Positions 2,218-61,507 of a stretch of DNA of 64,000 bases are shown here, in pieces. A program made the position numbers and the translations under genes. Location: IMG/VR virus record IMGVR_UViG_3300037116_000299, positions 150,301-214,300 of that record. One strand, written 5' to 3'. The notes beneath the pieces are model-generated. The model searched no databases, was not told the origin of the DNA, and was given only the letters and a program-made list of their open reading frames with translations. Each line of letters begins with the position of its first letter. Positions within the stretch are counted from its first letter, which is position 1.

Positions 2218-2418
2218 GTGCCGCAGATCGTGATTACCCAGGGTCAGGCGTACCTGAAGGGAAACGGTCTGCGGTGCATGGCTCCCCGCTATGACGACGC
2301 CACCTGCAAGTGCAACACGCTGGTGGTGAAGAAGAACTCGGCCGGTGAACTATCCGGGGCCTTCCAATGCCCCGAACGCCGCTGCCGCCAACACATCGAG
2401 GTTGAGGTTCGGCCCTAA
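2218..2418 (+). CDS. small Com-like zinc-finger protein
   Basis: GGAG precedes GTG at 2218; RC...CKCNTLVV...FQCPERRC resembles the Mu Com pattern (RC..CNKLL...IKCPRC). Confidence 0.45.
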   Translation: MPQIVITQGQAYLKGNGLRCMAPRYDDATCKCNTLVVKKNSAGELSGAFQCPERRCRQHIEVEVRP

Positions 2419-2503
2419 ACCGAACCCCTTCGTGAATCCAGCTCCACAAGAACACCCGCACGGTCCCGCGCGGACCAGCTCGCCCCAGGAGGGTATTTTC
2501 ACC

Positions 2504-23070: not shown

Positions 23071-26000
23071 GTGCCCAATCCATTCATCGTATTCGATCTC
23101 GAGGCCAGCTCCTTCAACACGGGGCTGGCCAATTCGTTTCTGAATGGAGACGGCCGCGGCGCTGACTTGATTCAGGAGTTCGTCCGCACTAGTTCCGACC
23201 CTTCCCGTCTGCAACAGCATCCCCTCTTCCAAGCTCACCAGCGTTCCCAGATTCTGCAGGTCTACGCAACCGGCGGCGCCTTTCAAGGCGGCGACGAAGG
23301 ATGGGTACGTCCGTTCGACGAGATGCGCCGGTTCAACCGGCCGATCGGGAATTCACTCTACGATGAGAGCGACTTTGCCCTCCGTCATTCCCTGCTCTCG
23401 AAGGCACAGGGAGGCCGCAACTATGAAGCCCAGCGCGTCGAGCAACTGTACCAGGGAATCTCGGACTCGATCCGGTCCCATGGCAAGGCAGTCCTCGGTG
23501 GGCACAACATCGGGTCTTATGACTTGTGGAGGCTCGAGTACGCCACCTATCAGCACGACTCCCTGCGGAATCGCCGCGGGTGGCTGGCGGACCAGGTGCG
23601 CACGGGCCGTCTCATGTTGCGGGACAGCGACGCCGAACTGCTCGGAGCTGCCTCGGCGTTTGCCCGCCAGGATGCAGACTTTGCCGCCCATCACTTGAAG
23701 GGTGCGACCGACGTGGCTTCGGCCAAGTGGGTCTCCGGTCACAACCTGACCAACATCACCGAGGCAATGGGCTATCGCAACACCAATGCCCACAATGCCC
23801 TGGATGACACCCTCGGGAATGTGGCGTTCTTCGGGGACATCGATTCGGGGAAGGCCTTCACGCCGGAATCACTGCGTTCGATCTTCCCCCGCCAGGCTGC
23901 CGCTGCCACGCGCGAAGCCGCGCCGCTCCGGGCTACCGTGGCTGAAGCTGCAACGGAAGCGCGTTCTCTCTTCACCGGCGGAGAGAAGAAGTTCCTCATC
24001 GGCGCCGCCGTCGCCGCCGCCGCCGCCGCCGTAGGCTCTCTGATTGCGCACTCTACCCGCCGCGATCGCCAGACCCAAATCACAGGTCTTGGCGAGACCG
24101 GCATGGGCGCGCAGGGCCGCCACAGACTCACGGACTTCGGCTCTGGCTACCAGGGCCTCTCCACCTCCCCCAATCCCTTCCAGCTCGAGTCTGAGGCCGC
24201 CTACAACCCCCTGGTGCGCGCACTGGGTGTAGGCGTCACCGGCTCTGCGCTCTACGGCGCCCATCGCTACATGCTGGCGACGAGCCCGAACTATGCCAAG
24301 CGCCTCCACGGTGCTGCGCTCAAGTTCGAGCAGTATTCCCCCATGCACCTGGGGCGCACCTTCGCTGCCAGCGAACGGTTCTCGTCCTACCTGCCCAGCA
24401 AGCTGGTATTCACCCGCGGGATGCTGACCAATGACGACGGCACCCTCAATGAGGTGGGCCAGACCTTCGATCGTCAGTTCTCAGCAGCCGGACACAAGTT
24501 TGATTTCCTGAATGAGGTCACCGAAGACAATCCCCTGGTCTTCGAAGGCCGCCGCCGGGCGGGCTCCGGATCCCTGCAACTCCAGGGGCGCGGCATCGAC
24601 ATCGAGACCCGGTTCGTCCCCTCCGAGGGACGTCTGGCGGGAACCGCCGCGCGGCTTGACCAGGCGTTGGTCAACCATCCGATTCGCAGGTCGCAGGCTC
24701 AGAGTTCAGTCAAGCAGGCCTGGGGTGATTTCCAGGCAGTCCGCCGATCCCAGCGAATCTCGAATGCATCTCCCTGGTCTGAAGTCGCTAGTGCTGAAAA
24801 GCTGTATCGGCCTTTCTATACCCAGGGGCATGTCGCCGATCCTGCCGACGAGCTGTTCTCCCAGGCCCGCAATGCATGGACCCGTCTTCGGGTAGAGGGG
24901 CTCGAGGCGACCGAGCGTACCCAGAGACTCTTCGCGGAAGCAGGGTTCGGACTGAAGGCAGGTACCTGGAACAAAGCAGCTCATCTCCCCTTTGTCGGGG
25001 AAGGCGGCATGCTCAACCAGATGCTCACCAAGCGCGTCGCGCCTCTGGTGCTTGCAGCCACTGCGCTGGGCTGGCTGGACTATAAGCTGGGGCATCCAAG
25101 CAACAAGATCGTCGATCTTGGCCTGAAGGCCAATGTCCTGCGCGCCGACCTGACCGATATGGTCCCCGGCGCCCGCGGCGTCACTGACTTCTACGACAAG
25201 GTCACCCCGGGATCGCAGTACGGCCCGTTGGCGTTGCCCCTGGCCGGCGCTTTCTTTGGAGGTGTCTACCACTACGGCAAACTCCTCGGCGGCAAGTACG
25301 CCGATGAGGCAGCCAGGACCCTCGGGGCTCGTATCCTCCCTGAGATGAAGGGCCTGCGCAACTTCACCGCTAAGGGTGGCAAGTTGGTTTCCGTCGAAGG
25401 AGCTTCCGCTATCTGGAAGTCTCTCGGCGCGCCGGGCAAGGGCGCTGCCATCGGCCTGGCTGCCATGGCTCTGTTCGTGCCCGGCATGCTTGGGTCCCGT
25501 AAGAGCGGCGCCGATCTGCGCGACATCTACTCCGGCAGCGAACCGATTCCAATCAGGTCCGGCCGCTGGTGGGAAGTCGGCTCAACACCCTACGAAGGCG
25601 GACGCATCAAGGAGTGGCGTCCCCACTGGAGCGTGCTGCGCAAGAGTCATGCAGAAGACATCTCGCTCTACGGATCCGAGAAGGATAAGTGGAAGCACAA
25701 TCCCATCCTGCATCCGCTGAAGTATGCCCGCGATCCCTACTGGCTTGAGAAGCAGCATTACTACGATCGACCGTACCCGGTTGCGTCCCCGGCGTTCTCC
25801 AATGTTCCCTTGATCGGCCCGCTGCTCGCCGCGACCGTCGGCAAGTTGGTCAAACCGCCTGTGCGCATGCATGAAGAGAACTGGAATGGAGAGGATTACA
25901 CCCTCTACTCAACCCGTCTGGAACCGAAGGGCCCAGGCGCGGTCGCGCCGCCCCGTCCGGAAGACGAGTTCACCCTCAGACATGCCCTCAAGCAGGAAGT

Positions 26001-28101
26001 AGGTATCCTGGCCGAGTACACCGGACTCTACGGATTCATCGCCAGCAGCGCCTACCAGGCCATCTTCCCAGGTGTGAACCAGGGCAAGGACGTCTACTTC
26101 CAGGGCTCCCGTCAGATGGACAATTTCTCCCGCCGCTACTACGAGCGGGAGCTGGGCGCCGGCATCGCGCCGTCTCCCTCGATGAAGGAACACTTCGGAT
26201 ACACCGAGCCCTTCCGCCGATTTGTCCAGCGGGAAGACTTCTCTCCCCAGGCCAACCCACTGCGCAACCAGATGCCTGGCTGGCTGCCCGGAGCCGACTA
26301 CCTCACCAACTTCCAAATCGGCGATCCCTTCACCAAGGTCGACGAGGGCTATGCCCGCCTGCCTGGCGCCGGCTACGAGGCCCTGCATCCAGAGTTGAAG
26401 GGACTCAAGCCCGAAGACTACCCCGACATCAACAAGCTGGCCATCCTGGGTGACGTAGCCCCGTACTCGCGCGAGTACAACATCTTCCGTTCGAAGGTAG
26501 GCGCCGACTCCGCCGACAACACCGAGCTGCGCATCGAGTACGAGAAGATCCTCGACCGCGTCCGGCAGACCAGGGAGTCCGTCATCCGGATGGACGCTCG
26601 TCGCTTCACCGAGCCTGTCGCTGAGCTTGAAGGCACCGTCGAAACGGCGACGCCCGGCGGAGTCACCCTCAAGGAACACCCCGGACAACTCTTCCAGTTC
26701 TCGTCCGTGAGCATGAGTGCCGCCAGCATGTCGGCGAGCATTCTCGGCGAGCACAACAATCTGACCCGCGCGGAAGTTGCCGGACAGGTTGACGAGCGCC
26801 ATCAGAAACTGCAGGACTACCTGGCTGGGATGGTTGGATCCAAAGCCCACCTGACAGTCCCCGATGGAACACTCGGCCGGGCGGAGCGCGCACGAGCCGT
26901 CATCGAAGTCGATGGCAAGAACCTCAACCGGGAACTGATCGACCAGGGTTACGGCCAGTATCAAGAACGCCTGGGCGGAGCTGAAGCGCAGGAGATGTTC
27001 GGCGCCGCCGGCAAGACCATGGGCTCGATCGCTGAGGCCCTCGCCTTCCAGGGCGACTCCGGCCGGCTCAACCCGATGCGCTACATCCCCACACCAGGCC
27101 ACACCAAGGCCTGGCAGGAGCGCACGCCACTCGCCCAGTACATGACCAACGAGGTTGTTGGCACCCGCATGCGGCGGTGGGAACGGCCCATCCATGACTT
27201 CCTCATGCCTTACGCACGAGGCGCCTGGCAGCGGATGAGCGGTAAAGCTCTCATTCCTGAGGATGTACAGGTTCGGCGGGATCTGAACACCCTGGGCGAC
27301 ACCATGCAATATCTCCGCGGACTCAATGCGGAGACCTCGGGGACCTATACTAATAAGAAGCAGAGGACTTCTGTCGGGGCCAACCTGTTTGCCGCGTCGA
27401 CGTTTGTAGCTTCTACCCTTCCCGCCCGCGAATCCCATTACTTCCGCCAGTTCCTCAACGAGACGGATCCCGAGAAGCGGGCCTCGATTCTCGAAGTGGC
27501 TTCGACCGAGATGCAGCGCGCCCTTTCCGCGCAGTGGGTCGCTCAGGAAGCTCGCATTCAGGTAGCCAACGGCGAAGACCCTGGCCCGATCGGCGAAGGC
27601 GGCCGGCTCTACACCCAGGCCAACGTCGAGGACTACAAGAAAACCGACACCAGTCTGGACTACGGCAATTGGTTGCGATCCAAGGAGATCGCCGACTTCT
27701 TCTCCCGCACCGGGTTTGCTCTTCCCGAACAAGGATCAGCTGCATACGACGAAGCTTTGGATTATGAGGACGTCAAGCTGAAACTGATTCAACAGGAAGG
27801 GTACGACTCCCATGACTTCAACATCTTCGATGACCGGGCAGCCATGCTGTGGCGCAAGCCGTATGTGGATGGCGCTGTCCGCGAACTCACCAGTGGTGAC
27901 GATCGTTCCCCAGAACAGTTGCGGCGGGCGGTCGAACAGCTGATGACAGCCTCACACGACGCAAGATCGGATGTTCGAACTGCGGTACACGCAAGCCACA
28001 CGAATCGCGCGAGCATTCGAGTGGATGTATCTGTCGACGAGAGCGACGCACTGGTGAGAGACATTCGCCGCAACCCCGACAAGTATGCGCAGGAGACGTA
28101 A
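23071..28101 (+). CDS. tape-measure-position giant protein (1676 aa) with N-terminal DEDDh 3'-5' exonuclease domain
   Basis: ExoI FDLE (D9,E11), ExoII GHNIGSYD (D151), ExoIII HNALDD (H241,D246); several hydrophobic helices; degenerate SNase-like segment near 26620-26970. Confidence 0.7.
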   Translation: MPNPFIVFDLEASSFNTGLANSFLNGDGRGADLIQEFVRTSSDPSRLQQHPLFQAHQRSQILQVYATGGAFQGGDEGWVRPFDEMRRFNRPIGNSLYDESDFALRHSLLSKAQGGRNYEAQRVEQLYQGISDSIRSHGKAVLGGHNIGSYDLWRLEYATYQHDSLRNRRGWLADQVRTGRLMLRDSDAELLGAASAFARQDADFAAHHLKGATDVASAKWVSGHNLTNITEAMGYRNTNAHNALDDTLGNVAFFGDIDSGKAFTPESLRSIFPRQAAAATREAAPLRATVAEAATEARSLFTGGEKKFLIGAAVAAAAAAVGSLIAHSTRRDRQTQITGLGETGMGAQGRHRLTDFGSGYQGLSTSPNPFQLESEAAYNPLVRALGVGVTGSALYGAHRYMLATSPNYAKRLHGAALKFEQYSPMHLGRTFAASERFSSYLPSKLVFTRGMLTNDDGTLNEVGQTFDRQFSAAGHKFDFLNEVTEDNPLVFEGRRRAGSGSLQLQGRGIDIETRFVPSEGRLAGTAARLDQALVNHPIRRSQAQSSVKQAWGDFQAVRRSQRISNASPWSEVASAEKLYRPFYTQGHVADPADELFSQARNAWTRLRVEGLEATERTQRLFAEAGFGLKAGTWNKAAHLPFVGEGGMLNQMLTKRVAPLVLAATALGWLDYKLGHPSNKIVDLGLKANVLRADLTDMVPGARGVTDFYDKVTPGSQYGPLALPLAGAFFGGVYHYGKLLGGKYADEAARTLGARILPEMKGLRNFTAKGGKLVSVEGASAIWKSLGAPGKGAAIGLAAMALFVPGMLGSRKSGADLRDIYSGSEPIPIRSGRWWEVGSTPYEGGRIKEWRPHWSVLRKSHAEDISLYGSEKDKWKHNPILHPLKYARDPYWLEKQHYYDRPYPVASPAFSNVPLIGPLLAATVGKLVKPPVRMHEENWNGEDYTLYSTRLEPKGPGAVAPPRPEDEFTLRHALKQEVGILAEYTGLYGFIASSAYQAIFPGVNQGKDVYFQGSRQMDNFSRRYYERELGAGIAPSPSMKEHFGYTEPFRRFVQREDFSPQANPLRNQMPGWLPGADYLTNFQIGDPFTKVDEGYARLPGAGYEALHPELKGLKPEDYPDINKLAILGDVAPYSREYNIFRSKVGADSADNTELRIEYEKILDRVRQTRESVIRMDARRFTEPVAELEGTVETATPGGVTLKEHPGQLFQFSSVSMSAASMSASILGEHNNLTRAEVAGQVDERHQKLQDYLAGMVGSKAHLTVPDGTLGRAERARAVIEVDGKNLNRELIDQGYGQYQERLGGAEAQEMFGAAGKTMGSIAEALAFQGDSGRLNPMRYIPTPGHTKAWQERTPLAQYMTNEVVGTRMRRWERPIHDFLMPYARGAWQRMSGKALIPEDVQVRRDLNTLGDTMQYLRGLNAETSGTYTNKKQRTSVGANLFAASTFVASTLPARESHYFRQFLNETDPEKRASILEVASTEMQRALSAQWVAQEARIQVANGEDPGPIGEGGRLYTQANVEDYKKTDTSLDYGNWLRSKEIADFFSRTGFALPEQGSAAYDEALDYEDVKLKLIQQEGYDSHDFNIFDDRAAMLWRKPYVDGAVRELTSGDDRSPEQLRRAVEQLMTASHDARSDVRTAVHASHTNRASIRVDVSVDESDALVRDIRRNPDKYAQET

Positions 28102-29171
28102 TGCAACCGCACAGCATCACCCTTGACCCCGAGCTGCACAGCGTTGATATCCGCGAGATTGAACGTCGCCTGAAAGAAAGGGTGGCTGGTCAAGATCCGG
28201 CCATTTCACAGTTGGTGGGCTTGCTCGAAACCTACTTTGCCGGCTACAACGACCCTAATGCTCCTGTGGGCGTGGTGCTTGCCCTGGGCCCGTCCGGGAC
28301 CGGCAAGACCAGTCTGATCGAAGCTCTGTGCGAGATACTCTACGACAACCCCAAGGCGCATGTTCGGATGAACTGCGCGGACTTCAAGGAGTCCCAACAG
28401 ACCCAGCGGATTGTCGGAGCGCCTCCGGGCTACATCGGTTTCAAGGACAAGTCGATCGAGACGTATTTGACCCAGGAGAATCTGGACCGCCATCACACGG
28501 CGAAGATGAAGCTCAGCGTCGTCCTGCTGGACGAGATCGAGGAAGCTCATAGCGCCCTCTATGACTACCTGCTGGCCGTATTCAATGACGGCGAAGGCAT
28601 GGTCAGCGGCAAGCTGGTCAACTTCCGCAACACCCTGTTTGTCATGACCTCGAACCTGGGGACCTCCACGAAGTCCAGCCTGCTTGGCTTTACGGCCGAC
28701 CAGGTCGCCGCCCATAACCACCAGAACGAAGCATCGATCCGCAAGGCAGTGCAGGAGCATTTCAAGTTCAAGTTCCTGAACCGCATCGACGAAACCATGA
28801 TCTTCGAGGCGCTGTCCAAAGAGACCATCGACCTGATCTTCGACATGCAGGTGTGCCAGATCCGCCGCAGGCTTCTGATCTCGAAGCAACCCGGTCCGCA
28901 GTACGTGTTCAAGATCCAGGACGATGCCCGCCAGGAGCTGGTCCGCCGCGGCTTTGACATCAAGTTTGGAGCCCGTCCCCTGAAGCGTGTCCTCCGCCGG
29001 GTCATTACCGACAAGCTGGCGGCTCTGATGCGCAGCGGCCAGGTGGAACACGGCGACCTGGTGGTGATCGATTACACCGGCATTCGCTTCATCTACGAGA
29101 AATACAACGGTGACGAAATCGGCCAGCTCTCGGACCCGCAATGGGCCGAGTTCAGCAGGATCATCGACTAG
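28101..29171 (+). CDS. stand-alone ClpA/B/C D2-type AAA+ ATPase
   Basis: VAGQD, Walker A GPSGTGKT, pore loop GAPPGYIG, Walker B LLDEIE, sensor-1 TSN, Arg finger NRID, sensor-2 GARPL; no D1 or N-domain. Confidence 0.9.
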   Translation: MQPHSITLDPELHSVDIREIERRLKERVAGQDPAISQLVGLLETYFAGYNDPNAPVGVVLALGPSGTGKTSLIEALCEILYDNPKAHVRMNCADFKESQQTQRIVGAPPGYIGFKDKSIETYLTQENLDRHHTAKMKLSVVLLDEIEEAHSALYDYLLAVFNDGEGMVSGKLVNFRNTLFVMTSNLGTSTKSSLLGFTADQVAAHNHQNEASIRKAVQEHFKFKFLNRIDETMIFEALSKETIDLIFDMQVCQIRRRLLISKQPGPQYVFKIQDDARQELVRRGFDIKFGARPLKRVLRRVITDKLAALMRSGQVEHGDLVVIDYTGIRFIYEKYNGDEIGQLSDPQWAEFSRIID

Positions 29172-29329: not shown

Positions 29330-32300
29330 ATGCCAAATCCCCTCCCATCGATGACCCGAACCGCCCTCAACTCCCTCAATGAGGGTGTTGACGGCGTGCG
29401 TGCATGGGCGAATCTCAGCCTGCTGCACTCCAGGGTGGGTATGGGAGCGGGCATTGCCATGCTGGCAGCTCCGTTGTTCCTGAAGAATGACGAGCGCGGT
29501 TACTTCCAGACGGCTGCGATGACCACTCCCTTGATCGCCGCCGGCGCCATGGTAGCGCCGCGGCTGTTCCCGACGCTGCAGCGCGAAGGTAAACGCCTCA
29601 TCGACGTGGTCAAGCAGGTTCCTACCGACTACGGCTTTCAGAGCGGGGTCTACAACGCCGAGAGCGGCGCAATGAACCTATCCGAACTGCGCCAGGCCTT
29701 CGAAGGCGGACGCATCTCCTCCGCGGATTACAACCGAGGTTTGCTGCGCTATCACGGTGACATTGCCGCCAGCGTGATCAGTCCCGACGAGATCGACCGG
29801 CAGTTCCTGTCGGCATCCCGCACCTTCTCCGAACTGTACAAAGATCCCACCAAGCACCGCATGCTCGAGAACGCGCTGTACCGCGCGACGCTGAGCCAGG
29901 AAAGCGCCGGCGAGAAAGCTGCCTGGAACGACCTGACGGCGGTTGCACCAAAGATGTCGCTCAATGAGATCGACGACCTGTTCGACGCCTACTCCAAGAA
30001 CCCGGACTGGCTGAAACAGGTCAACTACCGAATGCAGGAAGCCCGCAAGGCAACTACATCCGGCGCCACCATTCCCTCAATCGACACCCTGGTCGATGCG
30101 AATGCCGAGTACGTGCACTCTTACAGCCTGGATACAGATCAGGGCATGGCGATGCTCAAGAACTCGCCGTTCCAGGATGAGATGAGCGAGATCGAGACCC
30201 TGCTCGGCACTCAGGGTGCGGGCTGGAAACGATCTGACTTCGAACTGCAGGTTCTGCCTGATCGCAACCAGGCAGTCAACCGCATCCAGGGCCTGATGGT
30301 TCGGGGCGAGCTGTCGATTCCTTTTGCTGATGCGGACGGCGGCGTGCGCCTGGGCAGCCGGTTCGACCGGCACGGGGCCTCCCGCTTCTTCATCACCCAC
30401 AACGACCGGCTCTCCTCCCAGGTCTATGCCCTGCGCGGGCTGCAGAGCGGCCCCGCCGCCATGCCGAGTGTGGCCGAGGAGCTGGCGCGCGCTCAGTTCA
30501 ACATTCAGGGCGATGCAGGTGCATTGCGCAACCAGAAGTTCTTCTTTGGCAAGCAGGGTGTCATGGGCAATCTGCCGAACTCATTTCCCACCGAACGAGG
30601 CGCAAAGGGATTTGCCGATCTTCGTCCGGAAGAGATGATGGCCGCGATCAAACATCAGACCGAGGGGCCGGATGGCCTGGTCCGGATGTCAGGCGGTACG
30701 GGTCTGGACATCTATGAAGATCGCTCACTGCGGTTGATCGAGCCCCAGGGCGTGCACTCGCGTGAGGCGGAGAGTCTGCGCGGCAAGGCCGTCAACAAGG
30801 GCGTCTCCGCCTGGGTAGCTCCCGGCCATGAAGGCTTCTCCGCCACCAACGCCGTGGATCTTCCTGAGTTTGCGATGCGGACCTACCAGGTGTCGGGCAG
30901 CCAGCATGCCTTCTTCAGCGAGATGCCGGAATGGAAGGCGATCGAGAACGACGTCAACCAGCAGTTCGGTTATATGGAAGCTGCCGGTTTCGGAGGCAGC
31001 TCCGCCCTGGAAGAAGAGGCACGACAACTGTCTGTCGATGTCGCCTTGAGCAAGATTGGCGCTCGGGAACGCATGATCACCTTCATGGCAGGAGATGCGG
31101 GTGTTGGTATGGAAGCAGCCGAGGCCATGTACACCAAGTTCCTGCCATTCCTGGCCAATCCCAAGAACTACGAGGCCATGCGATCGCTCTCCTATCTGGG
31201 AGATGGATCCAGAATCATGGGCAACAGCATCGGCGCTGGCTTCACCCAGACCCGCTCGGTGCGCCTGCACGAGAGCCTGCTCACCGAAGGCATGCTGAAC
31301 GGGGAGACCATTCCCGAAGGCACGCCACTGGGCTTCGAGTACGGCAACGCCGTGTTCCCCAACGGGGAGCGCAACAAGATCGTCTCGCACTCGAGCACCT
31401 TCAACGAAGACGGGTCAATGACCTTCCAGATCGAAGAGAACCTGGGCAGCCAAGGCCTGAAGACGCACGGCTACACCAAGCAGACGACTGTGCTCGGGCT
31501 CAACGACCTGACCCTGGACCGCGTGCGCCGCGGTACGAATGCGTGGCATCAGGCGACCGGCAGCGGTGGTGTGGTCGATGAGCGAGTAGCCGCCTTCACC
31601 CTGGAGGGTTCCAACTCGGCCAAGGCCAAGAACCCCCTCTCCATCATGGAGAACATGCTGGGCGCCACGCTGGGCGATGTCCAGCAGGCAAACGGTGAGC
31701 TGCCCGACTTTCTCAATGCCGGCCTCAAGCAGCTGTCGCCCTACGGCTATTCGTTTGAGAACGGCGGACTGCTCAGCGACTCGTCGAAGTTCCTGAGCAT
31801 GGAGCATGCTCCTGCGAACTACACCGCTGTGGCCGAGATTATGCACGGCTTGATGGAACAGACCGGCGCGGCCATCAAGGCCGAGCAAATCAAGCTGGAC
31901 GCATCCATGCGCGGCTACATTGACTGGTCCATGAAGAACTCCAACGGGTCTTATACCGACTACAAGACCCGCTTCGGCATGCCCGAATCTCTCAGCGTAT
32001 CCGATCACATGGCCCTGAACCACGCCGGTGAGGTTCGGATCACGCGCGACGCACTGCAGCAGTTGAACATTATGGGCTACCACGAGGTTGCCAAAGAGAT
32101 CAACGACCGCCTGCAGACCGACGGACTCCCGAGTATGACCCAGGACTTCCTCAAGCACATCGAGAAGGACGGCCAGGACTTCTCCGGTCAGTTTGGTGAT
32201 ACCACCGTTTCGCTCGCTGATGCAATGGGAGGTTCCGACCTGCGCCTGGGCACCGCCGCTGGGCGCTCGGGTACGATCTTCGACCCAAAGAATCCGCTTG

Positions 32301-34279
32301 CCCAGAAGAACTACTCCGTCCTGGCCAATGTGGAAGGCAAGGACTATTACATCCCTGCCCTGGGGCGAGAAGCCTTTGGAGGCGGAGCAAACGCATACGG
32401 CACCGACGGTTACTCGGCCAACACGTGGGAGGGCCAGTTCAAAGATGTGCTGCAGGCTGCCGGCGGCGACAAGGAACCCTTCGAAGCGAAACTCAAGACT
32501 TACACCGACACCGTGAAACAGAAGGTGGGGATGGGCAAGGAGAGTGTGTGGCGCCCGTCGTCCGTTGACCCTCTGGGCATGGAAGGGCGCGCCGCCTCGC
32601 GCGCTTCGTCTCTGCGCTACGCGGATGGTTCCGTAAACCCCTACGAGATCGGAGTGGGCAACCGTTATCTGGATCTGATGGCCGCCGACGATGCAGCCGC
32701 TCTGCGCCGCGGTGGTAGCCGAGCATCTCTGCTCTTGCGTCACCCGATCAACGCTCCGGCCATCACCGTGATGAAGTACGACCCGCGGCTGGACAACACC
32801 TGGGACATTGGAGTGGATCCTCTGCTGCAGTTGATCGATAAGGGCGACACCGACGGCGATCGTATGTCAGCCCATCTGATCAACGGGGACCACTTCACCA
32901 AAGAAGGTTTCGCCAACTTCATGAAGAATGAAGTTCACGGATCTCAGAGCCTGCAAAGCAGTCAGGTCAAGTTCAACCGAATCTTCAATGGTGATGAGGG
33001 GCCCGTTCCCTTCAAGGACTGGTTCGCCGAAGCAGGTGAAGGCGCCCGGCGGCGCAACGGGTTTGCCACCTTCGCAGGAGTTGATGTCCGCCGCGCCCTG
33101 ATGGCTCGCACCGCCGGCGCCGACGTCGGCATGCTGTCGAACACCTTTGAGCTGATGGAGACCACGATCGCGCACAGCAATTCGATCCGCATGCCTGCCG
33201 AGCGTCTACTTGCCCACCAGACCCTGTTCGATATCGTCAAGCAATCCTCGATTGCCGCCCAGAAGTTGAAGAAGGGGGACGCGGTCGGGGACTACACCCA
33301 GCTTATGGCCTGGAACAACAAGCTGCGTGGTTCCCTTGCAGATCGGTCTGCCAATGGCCAACAGGGCTTTATGAAGGCCCTCATGGAAGGCGCTGAGAAG
33401 TTCGGCAAGGATGTCGACATCAACGATGAACACGTTGGAATGGGCATTGCCACCCAGGCAGAGCTGGAAGCTGGCAGTCAAATCAATCCCTACGCGCGCT
33501 TGCTCGAGCACAAGGCTGATCTCTTCGGACGGGTCCACTCTAGCTTCGACCCGCGACAGGCAGATGCCCATAAGCTATGGACCATGTCCGCCGCTGATGC
33601 CGAGAAGTTCTACGGCAACGTCACCGGCCGGATGACCGACGATATGCTTCCCCTGATCCAGGCGGCAGCCAACCGAGGCAGCGCAAGCAATTTGAGTGCT
33701 GCGGTTCTGGGAGCTGAGAACGAAGCCAACAAGGTGGCGCAGTTTGCCGGGAAGGCACGGCGGGCGGCCGCCGGGTTGGTCGATGCGGCCGGGCAGTCTG
33801 CGGAAGAAGTCATGCGGACCGCTCGGGGAGCTGGCGTCAGTAAGGTCCTGGGCATCGGCATGGCAGCCGCGGCTGCAGGAGGCCTGCTGTTGGGGTCTCT
33901 GCACAGCCCGCGCGAGGGACAGGCTTTGGCTCCTCCATCGGGTAATGCCCAGCGTCCGGAAGAACGGATCGGAGTCGAAGATCGCATTCCAGGAGAACCT
34001 GAGCCTGGGGCGATGGCACCTGCCAACCCACCGCGTATGGTGAGGTCAGCTCGGCAGGGTGTACGCACTTCCGTCGTTGCCCCCATGGGTCGTGCGACCC
34101 AGCTCGAAGTCCACATGAAGGCCGACGACCGTAGTCGAGCGGCCGAAGCTGCCCGTCTTGCCGCAAGACTTGCCTCCGGCGATGGGAACTCCAGCACCAC
34201 GATCAATTACCGCGACACCACTCGACTGGACAGTCTCCGCACCCGGGACAAGGTCCGCGAGGCGATGAACGAAAGCTAA
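29330..34279 (+). CDS. putative single-chain two-barrel (DPBB) RNA polymerase, probably virion-packaged (1649 aa)
   Basis: Beta-like half: GDGSRIM (D625), GLKTHGYTK (K711,K717). Beta-prime-like half: LLRHP (R1137) ... DPLLQLIDKGDTDGDRMSAH (D1173/D1175/D1177). Hydrophobic segments near both termini. Confidence 0.7.
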   Translation: MPNPLPSMTRTALNSLNEGVDGVRAWANLSLLHSRVGMGAGIAMLAAPLFLKNDERGYFQTAAMTTPLIAAGAMVAPRLFPTLQREGKRLIDVVKQVPTDYGFQSGVYNAESGAMNLSELRQAFEGGRISSADYNRGLLRYHGDIAASVISPDEIDRQFLSASRTFSELYKDPTKHRMLENALYRATLSQESAGEKAAWNDLTAVAPKMSLNEIDDLFDAYSKNPDWLKQVNYRMQEARKATTSGATIPSIDTLVDANAEYVHSYSLDTDQGMAMLKNSPFQDEMSEIETLLGTQGAGWKRSDFELQVLPDRNQAVNRIQGLMVRGELSIPFADADGGVRLGSRFDRHGASRFFITHNDRLSSQVYALRGLQSGPAAMPSVAEELARAQFNIQGDAGALRNQKFFFGKQGVMGNLPNSFPTERGAKGFADLRPEEMMAAIKHQTEGPDGLVRMSGGTGLDIYEDRSLRLIEPQGVHSREAESLRGKAVNKGVSAWVAPGHEGFSATNAVDLPEFAMRTYQVSGSQHAFFSEMPEWKAIENDVNQQFGYMEAAGFGGSSALEEEARQLSVDVALSKIGARERMITFMAGDAGVGMEAAEAMYTKFLPFLANPKNYEAMRSLSYLGDGSRIMGNSIGAGFTQTRSVRLHESLLTEGMLNGETIPEGTPLGFEYGNAVFPNGERNKIVSHSSTFNEDGSMTFQIEENLGSQGLKTHGYTKQTTVLGLNDLTLDRVRRGTNAWHQATGSGGVVDERVAAFTLEGSNSAKAKNPLSIMENMLGATLGDVQQANGELPDFLNAGLKQLSPYGYSFENGGLLSDSSKFLSMEHAPANYTAVAEIMHGLMEQTGAAIKAEQIKLDASMRGYIDWSMKNSNGSYTDYKTRFGMPESLSVSDHMALNHAGEVRITRDALQQLNIMGYHEVAKEINDRLQTDGLPSMTQDFLKHIEKDGQDFSGQFGDTTVSLADAMGGSDLRLGTAAGRSGTIFDPKNPLAQKNYSVLANVEGKDYYIPALGREAFGGGANAYGTDGYSANTWEGQFKDVLQAAGGDKEPFEAKLKTYTDTVKQKVGMGKESVWRPSSVDPLGMEGRAASRASSLRYADGSVNPYEIGVGNRYLDLMAADDAAALRRGGSRASLLLRHPINAPAITVMKYDPRLDNTWDIGVDPLLQLIDKGDTDGDRMSAHLINGDHFTKEGFANFMKNEVHGSQSLQSSQVKFNRIFNGDEGPVPFKDWFAEAGEGARRRNGFATFAGVDVRRALMARTAGADVGMLSNTFELMETTIAHSNSIRMPAERLLAHQTLFDIVKQSSIAAQKLKKGDAVGDYTQLMAWNNKLRGSLADRSANGQQGFMKALMEGAEKFGKDVDINDEHVGMGIATQAELEAGSQINPYARLLEHKADLFGRVHSSFDPRQADAHKLWTMSAADAEKFYGNVTGRMTDDMLPLIQAAANRGSASNLSAAVLGAENEANKVAQFAGKARRAAAGLVDAAGQSAEEVMRTARGAGVSKVLGIGMAAAAAGGLLLGSLHSPREGQALAPPSGNAQRPEERIGVEDRIPGEPEPGAMAPANPPRMVRSARQGVRTSVVAPMGRATQLEVHMKADDRSRAAEAARLAARLASGDGNSSTTINYRDTTRLDSLRTRDKVREAMNES

Positions 34280-34282
34280 ACC

Positions 34283-37200
34283 ATGAGTGTTACCTTCTCC
34301 ACCAGCAACTCGGGCCCTTCGTCTGCCGGCTACTTCCGGATCGGCTTTGTCACGCTGCAGATCCCGCCTCAGAACATCGTGACCTCGCGCGTCGTCAACA
34401 ACGACAAGCTGGCCACTCTGCGCGGCATGAACGAGATGTTCCGCAAGACCGGTCAGGCTCGCTGGGACGTAACCGTGAGCTGGGCCGCCATGATGGGCGG
34501 CGCCACACCCGAAGCCAAGTACCAGCAGTGGAATGATCTGCAGAACGTCGCCGCCATGTTCAAGGCAGCTCCCTTTGTCGAAGTCGAGTCACCTCACCTG
34601 CGCCAGGTCCTGGCCCCTCACGATCCGCTGATGGCTTATCCCCACCGGCTGGGGATGGCGTTGCGGCAGCTACGCGTTGATTCCCATCCCGATATCGTGG
34701 ACACCCTTCTGGTCACGTTGACGATGACCTACTTCAACTTCGGTCCCTACTCTGTGGCCTTCGACTATGTGGGCGACGAAGGACAGCCAGTCAGCGCCGA
34801 TCAATGCACCAAGTTCAAGAACTACATCGCCATGTGGCGCGCGAACAATATGGACCACGTCTCCGCGCGGGACGGCGACCCGATCGCACCGCTGTGGATG
34901 GCACAGGATCCAGGCGAGATGGCCCTGAAGTACCGGATCTACAACCCGGTTCCAACCGGTCAACTGCCGGACTTTGGAACCATGGTCATGCCTGGCGGCG
35001 CCCAGGTGGGCACGACAGTGCTGCCCAGCACCTACACTCCAGCGTCAGCGACATCTGCCGCGGCCGGCAAAGCGAGCAAGGGAACTCTGCCTCCGGATAT
35101 CGAAGCTCTGATTCGGAAGACGGCACTTACGGTCAAAGGGTACTGTGATCCGGCTATTGCCTGTGCAGTCTGTCTCACCGAAAGCGCTGGAAACCCAACT
35201 GCTCACAATGCAGGATCGACAGCACAGGGTCTCTTTCAGTTGCTGGCAGGCACGCGCCAGTCCCTCAACGTGGCGGACGGCTTCAATGCACAGCAGAGCG
35301 CCCAAGGTGGCTGCCAGTACCTGGCCGATCTGTTCAAGAAACTGGGCACCTGGGAGCTTGCCGTTGCTGGTTTCAACCAGGGATCCGGCACCATCGTTGC
35401 TTATCGGGACGGCAAGGCCTTGACCGACAAGAGCAACGGGCACGTGATCAATCCGAACAAGCTGGTGACCGGTGGAATTCCTCCGGATCCTGCTGTGCAG
35501 CGGTACGTTTCAACCATCCTGCGCAATGCACAGATGAAGTTCGGATTCACCGGGCAGACAGCACCTCAGCCAGGCTCCCAGCGGCCACAGACCGCACAAG
35601 TGGCACCGGCCGCTGCGACCAACAGCGCCACATCGCCCGCCACTTCCACCAGCAATCCAATGACAGCGACGGACTCCGCGACCGAACAGGCGTTCCAGGC
35701 CCAGGCTACCGAGATGGCGGCCGACGGTTGGAGTCTTGATCATCGGTCGGACACCGCGGGCGTCGGGATCTGCTTCTTCTACAAGGAAGCCGAAGTGAGG
35801 ATGGCTCCGCTCGATTCGTCTACGGCGGATGTCACCGGCGGCATCTGGCCCACCCAGTTCTCGGTTCTGCTGGTGAACAATCTGGCGCAGATCCCTCTGT
35901 CCGGTTATCAGTATCCGACCTATCAGCATCTTGGCCCCTGCAGTTCGCTGGTGCAGATCTCGTTCATGTCCAAGGGCGAGCGCGCCGACGAAACCCAGGA
36001 ACCTGTGCACGAAGGCCTCAGGTCGCTATCCTCCATGGCTCACTTCATGGAACAACAGCACCTGCGTCTGCGCACGCAACTGCGCACGCCCAATTCCCTG
36101 CATCGGATGCAGGCAGTCTACGTTGAGAACCAGGTCCTGAACATGCTCGGCATCTACGGCCTCATGCTTGACCAGGTCACTACCGAGACATTGCCCGAGT
36201 CCTCGGACCTGGTCACGGCGCAGCTGACGGCCAGCCAGTACGAGAACCGCTTCGAAGAGATCGAGCCCTACAAGTTGAACGGCATCTCCCAGGCCTACAA
36301 CCAGGGGTTGAAGGACCTGGTGCTGACCGACAATACCATTCAGCAGGCACCTTCCGATGTCCAGGGACCGTTGAAGCCCATCTTGAACTACCGCACCCAG
36401 GCAGATAACGCAGATGAAAATGCGATGATCGCGCGCCTGATGGAAGTCGCGGCTCAGCCGTCGTCGACTCTGTTCACGTACATGGCAGGTGCACCCACTT
36501 TCACCATCAGCCAGGTCGACGCCGCCCAGATCACCTACCAGACGGGAGTGGACTGGTCGAAGTATCCGGTCGCACTCGCCCGGGTGAAGCAACTCCAGCA
36601 GACTGGCGATGCTCAGACCTGGACGATGGCCGACTACCTGATGATCAAGAGCGTGGCCTGGAAGGTCTACAAGCCGGTTAATCTGGGCGGCAGTATTCAA
36701 CACGTCGACTCAACCTTCCAGGGCAACACCCGCCGGACGATGGTCCAGGATGCGTATCAGCGGCTGTTCGCGTACTTTGCCGCGAGCGACACCGGACTGC
36801 GCACCGCTCTCAACCAGGTGATGAACAGCCCAGCCCTGGCCGCCAAGGTCAAGGGCGCAGTGCCCTCCGGGGACCCGTCGCTGGCGTCACCAGGATCCAA
36901 CGACCACGGCGCCTACCGGGATATGGGTTTGAACACCATCCTGTTGAACGGCGAAGACTTCAACCCCGGCATGTACTTTGTCAACAACAACGAACAGTAC
37001 AAGACACTTGCGAAAGGCGCCCTGCTGGATGTGATGAGGTCGACGGCATCGGCGGCGGCGCAGACCAACAGCAATGACAACAGCCAGCAGCTGCCGAATT
37101 CAGTGGCCCCAATCTCCTCGACGACATCTCTGACTCCGACAAACCTCCCCGTAGATCAGGCAGGACAGATCAACCTGCCGGCAGGCCTCAAGTCGATCCC

Positions 37201-39973
37201 CGGCAATGCGGATACGGTCATGCGGATGTGCAACATCCCCGGCTACAACATGGCCGAGGCGTTCCCGACCTTCAAGCTGATGTTCCTGGAGGACGAGAAC
37301 AACAACGTCTATTACGCATTCGACGACTTCTTCAGCTATGCCTCGGTGCTCGACTTCGAGATGCAGCGGCCGTGGAATCGCCCGGCTACACTGCAGATCA
37401 AGATCACCAACCTGGCCTACCTGCTCAACCACAAGATCTACGATGCTTCGACCGCTGGCAAGTGGGCGTCCTACCGCGACCGCTTTGCCACCGAGGTCTC
37501 CGGATCCGCAGCAGTCGCTGTTCCTAGCGACACCAACACCAAGATCACTGCCGGAAAGGAAGGCATCGGAGGCACGCCCTATCAGCTGATGGGCCCGGAC
37601 ATGACCGAAGGCCCGCGCGGCGGCAACATGAAGAACCGTCGCATTCCGCTGCAGTATTTCCCACTGCAGACCGGCACCAAGATCCAACTGCGGGTTGGCT
37701 ATTCGAACAACCCCGACAAGCTGTTCCCCATCTTCTGCGGGACTGTGACGGAGATGGAAGGCAACGAGATCATCACCATCACAGCGCAGAGTTTCATGCT
37801 GGAGTTGACGGAACCGCTGAGCGACAAGGCTCAGACGGACTCCTGGATTCACATCGGCTCGCTGCTGGAGAGTGGCCTCAGCTGCCTAACCCTTGGCCGG
37901 ATTGGAACGATCGGCCGCGGCGCCGCCTATGGAGGCCTGACTCTCTTCGGCGACTCCGGCGATACCGGCACCGTGATCTCGAAGATGCTCAAGTCTTCGG
38001 GCGCGAAACACTTCGGGCACTGGCAGATCGATGCCACCGGCAACCACATGTTGAAGGGGTTTGGCTGGAAGGAACTGTCCGGCGAAGTGGCCGGCACCGC
38101 GGCGGGTTGGGTTGGTCATGGAGACGTGGGCATCGCATTGCAGTCGAACTACGATCGGACGGATGAGAACGTCATGATCAACTCGGCCGGCAACTTCGAT
38201 GGCACCTCGACGGACGCCGCCAACTCCCACCAGTATCTGGATCAGGGCAGCCCGTTGCGGCCGTTCTCCTACTACGTGGACTCAGCGACGCAGCTGACCC
38301 TCATGGAACTGATTCAGGACGTGGCCCGGCGTTATCCGGAGTACCTGCTGCTCGAGAAGTGGTACGGCTATCCGTACAGCTGCGATGCGACCCTGGTCTT
38401 CGGTCATCCCTTCGATTGGTACTTCGCTCGGCCGTCCCTGCTGGGCGACCAGGAGAAACAGCGCGCGGCCGATCAGAACATCGACGCTTACAAGCTGTGG
38501 TGGGACGCGCAGGGCAAGAAGATGTTCACAGATCTGTTGGGCGGTGCCGGTCACCTCAGTCTTCTTGGCATTCCGCTGGGCAGTTCTGTTGGCTGGCTGG
38601 AATCTCACGTGATGACTGGACTGGTAAACCAGGCGGCGCAGAGCCCCGCCGGTCTGCAGGCAGCTCTGCAGTCAGATGCCATCGTTGGAATGACACCGGG
38701 CGTTGTAGGAAAGATTCCAGGACTGAGGGACTTCCAGCGCGCCCTGCAGCAGGACGCAGCCGCTATCCTGAAGTCCTATTACGCCAGCCAGATGTCTGGT
38801 TCGGATCTGGCTTCTTCAGATCGCATGAAGCCCGTGCGCCGCTACCACTTCATCGACGACCAGTCGATCGTCCACAACGGCATGTCGCTCAACGACAAGA
38901 TCTACAACTGCGTGAAGATTGGGGATGGTGAGAAGGGCGGCAAGAAGTATGCCGTGAGCGCCAATCCCAACATCATGCCCAGCTACCTGCGGGCGCTCGA
39001 TGTGACGGACCGCATCAACGATCCGAAGCAGAACGTCATCGACCAGGCCCTGATCGGCACCAACCAGCAGATGATCCAGGTCTACGGCCAGAGCTTCCTG
39101 CGTGAAGAGGTCGGCAAGATGTACAAGGGCGAGATCATCCTGCGCGGGATCCCCGAGATCGAGCCGATGGACATCCTGATGATCATGGACCCGGCGACAG
39201 GCATGCAGGGACCTGTAGAAGTCGACACCGTGACCCAGATCATGAACCTTGAGATGGGTTTCATCACCATCATCAAGCCGCGGGCTGTCGTCTGCATCAA
39301 CGAAGCATCAAGCGCCGGTTTCCTGCGCATGTTGGGCATGATGGCCGGAGCCGCACTGCCGGAACTCCGCCGTCTGACCAGCCTGTCCAGGTATGCAGTG
39401 ACCGGTGCTGGCACCAAGGCAGTAACTGCTGCAGTTGTCGGCCGCGTTGGCTGGGCAGGTCTGAAGTGGGCGGGTGAAAAGGCGGCATCGGGAGTAGTCT
39501 CGAATGCCCTCAAAGCTACCAGTGAAGGACTGCTGGACGTCGCTACCGCTCCGGGCGCCATAACGGGCTTTACGACGGCAGTTGGGACCGCCTCTGAGGC
39601 CGCCGGCACCGCCGCCACCGGCGCGCTCGCAGCTGAAGGTGCAATGGCTGGAACGGTTGCCTTCCTGGCGAGCCCTCCCGGCTGGGCGGTACTCGCACTG
39701 TGCGCTGTGGCTGCGATCGGTGGATCCATCTGGATGGTCAACAAGGGCACTGAGAACAGCAATGCCCTGGTGATCTCTCCCTGCCTGAAGCTCGGCCGGC
39801 CCTGGGTCGGCGGCGTCCAAGGCTGGGCCATCGAGGACATGGTGGGCATCATGAACAACGAGGCTATGCAGTTCATGGCAGACGAGATCTTCCCCCTTTA
39901 CGACCTGTGGCTCGAAGCAGGCGGGTATTCCAACCCGATTCCGGCGGCATTTCAACCGGCTTTGGCCCAGTAG
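34283..39973 (+). CDS. baseplate hub / tail-associated protein with lytic transglycosylase domain (1896 aa)
   Basis: SLT motifs CLTESAGN (E300), AQGLFQL, GGCQYL, AVAGFNQG at about 35090-35520; C-terminal hub-like region (IQLRVGYSNNP...IFCGTVTE..., YKGEIILRG.P...P.D); hydrophobic C-terminal segment. Confidence 0.7.
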   Translation: MSVTFSTSNSGPSSAGYFRIGFVTLQIPPQNIVTSRVVNNDKLATLRGMNEMFRKTGQARWDVTVSWAAMMGGATPEAKYQQWNDLQNVAAMFKAAPFVEVESPHLRQVLAPHDPLMAYPHRLGMALRQLRVDSHPDIVDTLLVTLTMTYFNFGPYSVAFDYVGDEGQPVSADQCTKFKNYIAMWRANNMDHVSARDGDPIAPLWMAQDPGEMALKYRIYNPVPTGQLPDFGTMVMPGGAQVGTTVLPSTYTPASATSAAAGKASKGTLPPDIEALIRKTALTVKGYCDPAIACAVCLTESAGNPTAHNAGSTAQGLFQLLAGTRQSLNVADGFNAQQSAQGGCQYLADLFKKLGTWELAVAGFNQGSGTIVAYRDGKALTDKSNGHVINPNKLVTGGIPPDPAVQRYVSTILRNAQMKFGFTGQTAPQPGSQRPQTAQVAPAAATNSATSPATSTSNPMTATDSATEQAFQAQATEMAADGWSLDHRSDTAGVGICFFYKEAEVRMAPLDSSTADVTGGIWPTQFSVLLVNNLAQIPLSGYQYPTYQHLGPCSSLVQISFMSKGERADETQEPVHEGLRSLSSMAHFMEQQHLRLRTQLRTPNSLHRMQAVYVENQVLNMLGIYGLMLDQVTTETLPESSDLVTAQLTASQYENRFEEIEPYKLNGISQAYNQGLKDLVLTDNTIQQAPSDVQGPLKPILNYRTQADNADENAMIARLMEVAAQPSSTLFTYMAGAPTFTISQVDAAQITYQTGVDWSKYPVALARVKQLQQTGDAQTWTMADYLMIKSVAWKVYKPVNLGGSIQHVDSTFQGNTRRTMVQDAYQRLFAYFAASDTGLRTALNQVMNSPALAAKVKGAVPSGDPSLASPGSNDHGAYRDMGLNTILLNGEDFNPGMYFVNNNEQYKTLAKGALLDVMRSTASAAAQTNSNDNSQQLPNSVAPISSTTSLTPTNLPVDQAGQINLPAGLKSIPGNADTVMRMCNIPGYNMAEAFPTFKLMFLEDENNNVYYAFDDFFSYASVLDFEMQRPWNRPATLQIKITNLAYLLNHKIYDASTAGKWASYRDRFATEVSGSAAVAVPSDTNTKITAGKEGIGGTPYQLMGPDMTEGPRGGNMKNRRIPLQYFPLQTGTKIQLRVGYSNNPDKLFPIFCGTVTEMEGNEIITITAQSFMLELTEPLSDKAQTDSWIHIGSLLESGLSCLTLGRIGTIGRGAAYGGLTLFGDSGDTGTVISKMLKSSGAKHFGHWQIDATGNHMLKGFGWKELSGEVAGTAAGWVGHGDVGIALQSNYDRTDENVMINSAGNFDGTSTDAANSHQYLDQGSPLRPFSYYVDSATQLTLMELIQDVARRYPEYLLLEKWYGYPYSCDATLVFGHPFDWYFARPSLLGDQEKQRAADQNIDAYKLWWDAQGKKMFTDLLGGAGHLSLLGIPLGSSVGWLESHVMTGLVNQAAQSPAGLQAALQSDAIVGMTPGVVGKIPGLRDFQRALQQDAAAILKSYYASQMSGSDLASSDRMKPVRRYHFIDDQSIVHNGMSLNDKIYNCVKIGDGEKGGKKYAVSANPNIMPSYLRALDVTDRINDPKQNVIDQALIGTNQQMIQVYGQSFLREEVGKMYKGEIILRGIPEIEPMDILMIMDPATGMQGPVEVDTVTQIMNLEMGFITIIKPRAVVCINEASSAGFLRMLGMMAGAALPELRRLTSLSRYAVTGAGTKAVTAAVVGRVGWAGLKWAGEKAASGVVSNALKATSEGLLDVATAPGAITGFTTAVGTASEAAGTAATGALAAEGAMAGTVAFLASPPGWAVLALCAVAAIGGSIWMVNKGTENSNALVISPCLKLGRPWVGGVQGWAIEDMVGIMNNEAMQFMADEIFPLYDLWLEAGGYSNPIPAAFQPALAQ

Positions 39974-56588: not shown

Positions 56589-56614
56589 CCAATCTCTTCA
56601 AAGGACCTGAAATC

Positions 56615-60040: not shown

Positions 60041-60229
60041 GTGAAAGTGAAAGAGATCGAAACCGAGCAGAACGACATCATGGATGCGAGTGAACTGGCG
60101 GCTCTTCTGCGTGTCAATGTAGTAACTGTCCGCCTCAAGGCTTCAGCGGGTGTGATTCCAGGCCGGCAAATCGGAAACCGCTGGCGCTTCAGCCGCACAC
60201 GGATCATTCAGTGGATGGAGTCCGCTTGA
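60041..60229 (+). CDS. excisionase-like helix-turn-helix protein (HTH_17/MerR-like)
   Basis: MDASELAALLRVNVVTVR......IPGRQIGNRWRFSR..I..WM; strong GAGGAGGAGG SD; adjacent to integrase. Confidence 0.8.
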   Translation: MKVKEIETEQNDIMDASELAALLRVNVVTVRLKASAGVIPGRQIGNRWRFSRTRIIQWMESA

Positions 60230-61334: not shown

Positions 61335-61378
61335 GACTTCTTTCCGAACCCCCGTATGCAATATCAGGAAGTATACCT

Positions 61379-61430: not shown

Positions 61431-61507
61431 GCGCCCGTAGCTCAGCTGGATAGAGCGGCAGCCTCCGAAGCTGTAGGTCAGAAGTTCGAATCTTCTCGGG
61501 CGCACCA
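61431..61507 (+). tRNA. tRNA-Arg (anticodon CCG), 77 nt with encoded CCA
   Basis: GCGCCCG acceptor pairs with CGGGCGC; D-loop AGCTGGATAG; anticodon arm GCAGC-CTCCGAA-GCTGT; T-loop GTTCGAAT; ends ACCA. Confidence 0.95.

Follow-up and report, generated by a model that had tools for sequence, protein, structure and literature searches.

We analysed a 64,000-nucleotide stretch of IMG/VR virus record IMGVR_UViG_3300037116_000299 (positions 150,301 to 214,300 of that record; hereafter the window), which covers the structural half of a prophage, with the terminase and portal genes lying just upstream. Our subject is one open reading frame (ORF) in it, a separate, stop-bounded gene of 1649 open codons on the plus strand (29330..34279), which a preliminary description, made from the sequence alone, had read as a single-chain two-barrel RNA polymerase (RNAP) encoded inside the tail module of a temperate phage. 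From residue conservation and a predicted structure, we are highly confident that this gene encodes a real single-chain two-barrel RNAP of a new, unannotated family, with catalysis predicted.

The polymerase-like protein and its family

The features of the gene are as follows, each with the evidence on which it rests.

29330..34279, plus strand: single-chain two-barrel RNA polymerase-like protein, 1649 residues (ORF, AlphaFold2 model, Foldseek)
29417..29569, plus strand: conserved, moderately hydrophobic N-terminal motif, residues ~30-80 (P48, R56, T65, T66, P67 and P77 conserved to at least 90%)
31187..31504, plus strand: beta-type barrel region, residues ~620-725 (conservation, AlphaFold2 model)
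codon 31202, plus strand: D625 of a G-[DE]-[GT] motif in the beta-type barrel region (conservation)
codons 31460 and 31478, plus strand: K711 and K717 of the basic hairpin G-x-K-x-D-x-G-x-K-G (conservation, model)
31505..32509, plus strand: inter-barrel connector of ~335 residues, mostly helical with two small sheets (AlphaFold2 model)
32510..32884, plus strand: beta-prime-type barrel region, residues ~1061-1185 (conservation, model)
32534-32539, plus strand: the GK codons of G1069-K1070...R1075 in the beta-prime-type barrel region (conservation)
32738-32746, plus strand: R1137-H-P1139 in the beta-prime-type barrel region (conservation)
32846-32860, plus strand: D1173-T-D1175-G-D1177 in the beta-prime-type barrel region (conservation)
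33086..33172, plus strand: bridge-helix candidate, a 29-residue helix (1253-1281) with conserved R1260, G1267, S1270 and N1271 (position and pattern only)
33194..33340, plus strand: trigger-loop candidate, helix-loop-helix 1289-1337 with Q1305, I1308 and invariant K1312 (position and pattern only)
33836..33901, plus strand: predicted transmembrane helix, residues 1503-1524 (Kyte-Doolittle)
33947..34276, plus strand: conserved C-terminal domain, residues ~1540-1649 (R1542, P1543, E1544, G1560, R1637 and others; family conservation)

A scripted check of the translation reproduced residues 1134-1182 exactly as the preliminary description quoted them, placed D1173, D1175 and D1177 at codons 32846, 32852 and 32858 as it had done, and found D625, K711, K717, R1137 and P1139 all where it had put them. 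Two of its other statements fared less well. It had given the spacing from the proline of R-x-P to the first aspartate as 9, the same as in bacterial beta-prime, a value that matches nothing we could identify; from P1139 to the first aspartate, D1173, the distance is 34 residues in the window protein and 33 in E. coli beta-prime, with a range of 33-40 across the family. It had also described hydrophobic segments at both ends of the protein. The C-terminal one (1503-1524) passes a Kyte-Doolittle threshold of 1.5; the N-terminal one (~35-80) does not, and is better described as a moderately hydrophobic but strongly conserved motif. As to the start of the gene, the ATG at 29330 lacks a Shine-Dalgarno-like sequence upstream, and an identical protein in a JGI gene call (P0001) has 1642 residues, 7 fewer than the window ORF, which would fit a start at M8.

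Conservation was scored in an alignment of 56 sequences, whose identity to the window protein runs from 47% down to about 17%. The three aspartates of the DxDxD loop (D1173, D1175, D1177) are kept in 56/56 homologs and P1139 likewise in 56/56; G1012, G1069 and K1312 are also invariant. R1137 is found in 54/56 sequences, K711 and K717 in 53/56 each, K1070 in 55/56 and R1075 in 54/56, while position 625, which follows the invariant G624, is glutamate in 50 and aspartate in 5 of 55. The glycine that completes the DxDGD of the preliminary description does not share in this: G1176 (window 32855-32857) is not a family feature, the position being lysine in 20, glycine in 19 and leucine in 8 of 56. 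Beyond these positions, the family consensus reads, in order, G-E-[GT]; G-x-K-x-D-x-G-x-K-G; P-v-l-G..a-Y-G-G; G-K...l-R....D-P....G...t-R-x-S; N-P-F-E; R-x-P; a-D-x-D-x-D; R-x-a-g..i-G..S-N; and r-Q-x-p-I-s-a-x-K. Because the three aspartates are invariant and the other catalytic residues nearly so at ~20% overall identity, the active site appears to be under selection.

These positions can be compared with the eight residues that are invariant in all two-barrel RNAPs, namely the three aspartates, the beta-type aspartate, the arginine and proline of the beta-prime-type barrel and the two lysines of the basic loop (Ruprich-Robert and Thuriaux, PMC2919709); DNA-dependent members additionally share the switch-2 lysine (PMC2919709). 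Every residue listed there has a conserved candidate in the new family, as judged from the alignment. R1137 and P1139 correspond to R446 and P448 of Rpb1, and K711 and K717 to K979 and K987 of Rpb2. The acidic residue at 625, D or E in 55/55, is by its sequence position a candidate match to Rpb2 D837, the acid for the second Mg, and G1069-K1070...R1075 resembles GKRVDYSGRS of beta-prime and is, by motif only, a candidate for the switch-2 lysine, Rpb1 K332. When sub-profiles of the two barrels were compared by hhalign with E. coli RpoC and RpoB, the best local matches fell on NADFDGD and GDKMAGRHGNKG, with scores that were non-significant.

An AlphaFold2 model of residues 440-1420 (981 residues), built on the 56-sequence alignment, is confident (mean predicted local distance difference test score, pLDDT, 90.8; predicted template modelling score, pTM, 0.89); a model from five sequences (pLDDT 51.6) was discarded. 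In the model, D625 lies just before a strand, the beta hairpin with K711 and K717 belongs to a run of eight strands, R-H-P comes after a strand, and the aspartate loop is held between a short helix and a strand. Past the second barrel come a 29-residue helix (1253-1281) and then a helix-loop-helix (1289-1337). We infer that the aspartate triad and the lysine pair would converge on one site.

Foldseek searches of the PDB with this model returned RNAP large subunits, and these of both types, for 50/50 of the best matches, most of them at probability 0.9-1.0. The beta-prime-type matches include phage AR9 (7s01_d), E. coli (8txo_J and 6alf_J) and Pol III (6tut_A), and the beta-type matches include vaccinia (6rie_B) and Pol II (5ip7_B and 1i50_B). 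A PolD-like DNA polymerase or a QDE-1-type enzyme as the closest relative was considered and rejected, as neither was among these 50. In BFVD, the best match was a 'minor tail protein' of Siphoviridae sp. ctnpt50 (A0A8S5SD80; E 1.6e-9, TM-score 0.44, ~1000 columns). The other leading matches were phage proteins without characterisation (A0A7R7G2L5; A0A172Q021 and A0A172Q0S6 of Acinetobacter phage ME3; A0A075BUT7 of Microcystis phage MaMV-DC), and lower ranks held annotated RNAPs of nudiviruses, giant viruses, crAss-like phages and P23-45. Between them, the conserved catalytic residues, the confident model and best PDB matches made up of RNAP subunits alone bear out the reading of the gene as a beta-then-beta-prime two-barrel RNAP in a tail module, and the protein very probably has the predicted fold with an intact polymerase active site.

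By sequence, the family stands apart. Searches of Pfam, PHROGs, NCBIfam and PDB sequences with the 1649-residue protein gave no meaningful match, and neither blastn nor tblastn against 50,697 GenBank phage records (SPbeta-like phages included) found a match to it; tblastn of the same records with two distant family members was equally negative. A family profile searched against PDB sequences returned noise only, and Pfam searches with 30 members gave a single weak match to RNA_pol_Rpb1_2 (E 0.032) amid noise. A word-indexed search of 5.8 billion proteins recovered just six relatives of the protein. When 1.84 billion cluster representatives (clusters at 50% identity) were searched with a core profile (residues 585-1340), 102 proteins matched, 64 of them at E < 1e-30, and ~55 were full length (roughly 1500-1830 residues). 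All members that were looked up are 'hypothetical protein' or unnamed, come from JGI and Logan metagenomes and have no NCBI or UniRef accession, and neither these look-ups nor the tblastn searches of GenBank phages turned up a cultured phage that carries one. The sole match among 185,579 species genomes was a metagenome-assembled genome of the Acidobacteriaceae; in IMG/VR, some contigs are ~100% identical to the window and others match at 45% identity. One further protein in ENA (P0003, 1451 residues) is near-identical to the protein P0002 apart from unrelated stretches and an early end, and looks like the product of assembly frameshifts.

The absence of any sequence or profile link to these libraries or to P23-45 gp96, together with the unnamed metagenomic origin of all members looked up, upholds the earlier suggestion of a new clade. 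Our literature searches found no description of the polymerase family, nor of a polymerase encoded in the tail module of a temperate phage with a contractile tail, the 23 RNAP families catalogued with PMC10770324 not having been compared.

Genes around the polymerase-like gene

The surrounding structural module and the prophage end contain the following genes.

2345-3832: major capsid protein
12567-13640, minus strand: glycosyltransferase-like gene, which breaks the otherwise co-directional structural module
16731..18578, plus strand: tail sheath
18688-19386, 19476-20402 and 20405-21922: three consecutive paralogs after the sheath, all matching phrog_9206 ('major head protein')
23071..28101, plus strand: giant protein 1, 1676 residues, a highly conserved orphan
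28101..29171, plus strand: stand-alone AAA+ ATPase of the ClpB/ClpA/ClpV D2 type
34283..39973, plus strand: giant protein 3, 1896 residues, with an SLT lytic transglycosylase domain (~285-374) and a C-terminal transmembrane segment
41382..42593, plus strand: baseplate J-like wedge protein, preceded by small baseplate genes
56399-58153: tail fibre
60204..61361, minus strand: tyrosine integrase at the prophage end
61431..61507, plus strand: tRNA-Arg(CCG) adjoining the integrase

The contractile tail genes, the integrase and the adjacent tRNA-Arg confirm the earlier view of an integrase-bearing temperate myophage. Since the integrase and the tRNA gene are divergently oriented, the prophage borders on the 5' side of the tRNA and not on its 3' end. 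We take the three phrog_9206 paralogs to be tail-tube proteins, from their position after the sheath; the third (20405-21922) has a CarboxypepD_reg-like insert. Two small genes separate these paralogs from giant protein 1. The polymerase gene stands between the genes for sheath and tube and those for the baseplate, reads in the same direction as the structural genes and lies close against them, and no promoter-like or terminator-like excess sets it apart from the tail operon, with the proviso that a sigma-70 consensus may not fit the host. Relatives at ~18-46% identity keep the order sheath, tube, giant protein 1, (ATPase), polymerase, giant protein 3, baseplate J, and the part from giant protein 1 onwards, with three small genes ahead of baseplate J, persists even in members at ~18-24%.

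The preliminary description had called the neighbours of the polymerase gene tape-measure-like and hub genes, and neither label could be confirmed. Giant protein 1, upstream, matched no protein family, tape measures included. It is more conserved among the relatives than the polymerase is (61% mean column identity), and given this high conservation we judge it to be unlike a tape measure. The protein is rich in W, Y, P and H and has two hydrophobic segments, with an extra N-terminal extension of ~380 residues in the window copy. A distant homolog (L020 3397-7779) carries an REase_MTES_1575/DUF559 endonuclease domain at residues 616-722, and giant protein 1 may be another injected enzyme. In giant protein 3, downstream, size and position are constant, and a hydrolase cassette at ~270-375 is swapped between SLT, glucosaminidase and a weak VanY-like domain (counterparts at L002 14839-20265, L019 5589-11345 and L020 14730-19823). 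Cassette swapping of this kind is typical of ejected tail lysins, and giant protein 3 is probably an ejected cell-wall-digesting tail protein. No terminal modules shared among the three giant proteins were found by blastp. In the distant relative L020, a papain-like Peptidase_C1 gene (9125-9997) lies directly upstream of the polymerase-like gene.

Proposed packaging and injection, and the alternatives

The best explanation overall, and one that we hold with moderate confidence, is that the protein is a packaged, injected polymerase that starts phage transcription; packaging into the virion and injection, which we infer from the position of the gene, are by themselves somewhat favoured. Such an enzyme would carry D/E625 and the lysine hairpin K711/K717 in its beta-type double-psi barrel, followed by the ~335-residue connector, and GK1070, R1137-x-P1139 and the presumed Mg-binding D1173-x-D1175-x-D1177 loop in its beta-prime-type barrel, after which would come a bridge-helix-like helix and a trigger-loop-like hairpin. 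It would be made with the tail and built into the virion alongside the neighbouring giant proteins. Incorporation is proposed because the gene lies in a late tail operon beside a giant with swappable cell-wall hydrolase cassettes. Where present, the adjacent ClpB-D2-type unfoldase might help to load the polymerase. On contraction of the tail, the enzyme would be ejected into the host, where the N-terminal motif and helix 1503-1524 could hold it at the inner membrane near the point of DNA entry. Transcription of the first phage genes there would not need host RNAP, as with gp66 of crAss-like phages and gp96 of P23-45. Precedents for parts of this scheme exist: gp96 is a tail-associated virion RNAP, fused to the tape measure, that transcribes pre-early genes (PMC10770324), and crAss-like gp66 enters the virion in company with two neighbouring proteins, of which one is a protease (bioRxiv 10.1101/2020.03.07.982082).

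A number of observations count against the proposal of a packaged, injected polymerase. All sequence and profile comparisons of the family with known RNAPs are non-significant. Among the Foldseek matches in the PDB, none reaches E <= 1e-3 (the best lie at 1e-3 to 1e-2), and TM-scores are low (0.1-0.17), the latter because only 250-400 of 981 residues align. The two lysines of the basic hairpin are 6 residues apart in the window protein and 7 in most of the family (range 6-8), compared with 8 in cellular enzymes. Passage through the tail tube would be physically hard for a folded core of ~1000 residues with a long connector; gp96 has been argued to be flat and clamp-less so as to pass the tail channel (PMC10770324), in contrast to a protein with a ~335-residue connector. 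Finally, the AAA+ ATPase is present in the relatives L004, L005 and L020 but not in L001 and L002.

The problem of moving a large folded enzyme through a tail tube also speaks for the main rival, in which an active two-barrel RNAP is not packaged at all. Like SPbeta YonO or P23-45 gp64, it would be produced inside the infected or induced cell and transcribe a class of phage genes there, and the gene would lie in the tail operon only incidentally. The fold and the active-site evidence fit this equally, non-virion single-chain RNAPs exist (PMC10770324; PMC5467207), and the structural neighbour ORF65 of MaMV-DC lies outside the tail module of its phage. We nevertheless consider it unlikely. The position between tube and baseplate is kept family-wide, down to ~18% identity, in a gene that is co-directional and tightly packed with structural genes, and a polymerase expressed only alongside late structural genes could contribute little to the cycle under way unless it were packaged. 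Nor would one expect a soluble cytoplasmic polymerase to have the conserved hydrophobic N-terminal motif, the transmembrane helix or the C-terminal domain.

Alternatively, an injected two-barrel enzyme could have a main job other than making mRNA, such as pulling in the genome by transcription-like translocation, making primers, or copying RNA as QDE-1 does. The intact catalytic site and the membrane-anchoring segments would suit such roles; QDE-1-type two-barrel enzymes show dual template use (PMC9508822), and a coupling of transcription to DNA entry has been proposed for gp96 (PMC10770324). Nothing we found specifically supports any of these roles, however, QDE-1 is absent from the 50 best PDB matches, and the invariant GK, a switch-2-type lysine, is reported as a feature of DNA-dependent members (PMC2919709), so we regard a non-mRNA role as distinctly improbable.

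More improbable still is that the protein has a structural, tape-measure-like role in the tail or in ejection and keeps a relic polymerase fold without catalysis. The gene does occupy the usual spot of a tape measure and is similar in size to the neighbouring giants, one BFVD neighbour is labelled 'minor tail protein', and R1137 is lost in 2/56 homologs and K711 and K717 in 3/56 each. Yet an invariant aspartate triad and near-invariant other catalytic residues at ~20% identity point to selection on the active site, and the model is that of a globular alpha/beta enzyme with no extended helical ruler, in a protein that matches no tape measure family. We rejected a tape measure identity as such, given the confident globular alpha/beta model (981 residues) and the lack of a match in PHROGs, Pfam and NCBIfam. 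That the DxDGD and K...K motifs arose by chance in a long orphan protein, as short motifs may in 1649 residues that no sequence search links to RNAPs, is already refuted by their invariance across 56 divergent homologs and by a confident model with solely RNAP subunits among its 50 best PDB matches.

The proposal of a packaged, injected polymerase can be extended to its neighbours, though only tentatively, and we think the extension possible rather than likely. Giant protein 1, the ClpB-D2-type unfoldase, the polymerase and the giant hydrolase might together be an injected 'entry and first-transcription' machine that has so far gone unrecognised in temperate phages with contractile tails. In this scheme the giants would be threaded into the tail by the unfoldase and ejected upon contraction, and the hydrolase giant would open the wall; the membrane-anchored polymerase, placed at the DNA exit, would then transcribe the genome without need of the host enzyme, and might help to draw the genome in. 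If so, the structural relatives in MaMV-DC, ME3 and the 'minor tail protein' would mean that hidden tail-associated two-barrel polymerases are widespread.

Virion-delivered two-barrel RNAPs are known in few lineages (crAss-like phages, P23-45-like phages of Thermus and jumbo phages), and each changed the view of its group's infection programme. What is new here is a sizeable unannotated family, ~100 clusters at 50% identity and all 'hypothetical', in a new setting: contractile-tailed, integrase-bearing prophages of soil Acidobacteria, with the polymerase as a free-standing gene, surrounded by those of an unfoldase and of giant tail proteins. Should the enzyme prove to be packaged, temperate myophages would join the phages whose first transcription does not depend on the host, such polymerase genes could be annotated by a tractable sequence signature, and one would have to ask how a core of ~1000 residues and its long connector get through a tail tube. 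In addition, the family widens the sampling of single-chain two-barrel enzymes, which is relevant to the origins of RNAP and of the eukaryotic polymerases of RNA interference.

Comparison with known systems

One of the closest known systems is gp96 of P23-45, the N-terminal part of a 5,002-residue tape measure protein (PMC10770324). Like the new protein, gp96 is a single-chain two-barrel RNAP with DxDGD; it too is located in the tail module, at the tape measure, with membrane segments and a cell-wall-degrading activity associated, and injection followed by transcription of the first genes has been proposed for it (PMC10770324). In contrast, the new polymerase is a separate ORF that is not fused to a tape measure, in an integrase-bearing phage with a contractile tail, and its core is central (residues ~600-1340) where that of gp96 is N-terminal. 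The connectors differ as well, with ~335 residues here, 67 disordered residues in the clamp-less gp96 and ~140 in gp66 and QDE-1 (PMC10770324; bioRxiv 10.1101/2020.03.07.982082). When the family profile was aligned by hhalign with gp96 residues 1-1200 and 300-1150, the probability was at most 1% and the alignment fell off DFDGD; gp96 was also not in the 50 best PDB matches.

The crAss-like enzyme phi14:2 gp66 (PDB 6VR4) is, like the members of the new family, a large single-chain two-barrel RNAP; gp66 is virion-associated, as the new protein is proposed to be. Both gp66 and most of the new family have DxDxD without glycine at the fourth position, which all RNAPs studied before the crAss enzyme possessed (bioRxiv 10.1101/2020.03.07.982082). 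Both genes are flanked by those of large proteins, in some genomes with a protease gene nearby, the Zincin-like gp65 in phi14:2 and Peptidase_C1 in L020. The phage of gp66 differs in being podovirus-like, mostly lytic and a parasite of Bacteroidota, and structural matches to crAss-like proteins are weak (E ~2e-3, TM-score 0.21 in BFVD), with 6VR4 not in the 50 best PDB matches.

SPbeta YonO shares with the new protein a single chain, the beta-then-beta-prime order of the two barrels and a temperate phage as its source. YonO is a soluble, non-virion enzyme that transcribes phage genes in the cell. Its mass is ~100 kDa (PMC5467207). With the multisubunit beta/beta-prime enzymes (Rpb2/Rpb1), including the non-virion RNAPs of phages AR9 and PhiKZ, the new protein shares GK...R, R-x-P, DxDxD and G-x-K...K-G. 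It differs from them in having both barrels in one chain and a basic loop two residues shorter, and no further domain of the cellular RNAP subunits was detectable in it by sequence.

The nearest structural neighbours are the BFVD proteins of ctnpt50, MaMV-DC and ME3 (up to ~1000 aligned columns, E 1.6e-9 to 1.4e-7, TM-score up to 0.44), for which we found no experimental characterisation in the literature searched. In MaMV-DC, two unannotated giants bear two-barrel signatures. ORF65 (A0A075BUT7; L022 1225-6258, minus strand; 1677 residues) has R-T-P, GDADGD 34 residues further on and a G-x-K...K-G hairpin, and in the 3560 residues of ORF82 (L022 18653-29335, minus strand) GDFDGD occurs at 2537; neither ORF gave a significant hhalign match to the family. 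Unlike the new gene, ORF65 lies outside the tail module. A transcriptome study of Ma-LMM01 assumed host RNAP only. The kind of enzyme to which the window protein belongs is already known, from the single-chain two-barrel virion RNAPs crAss gp66 and P23-45 gp96, and what is new is a separate variant family of it.

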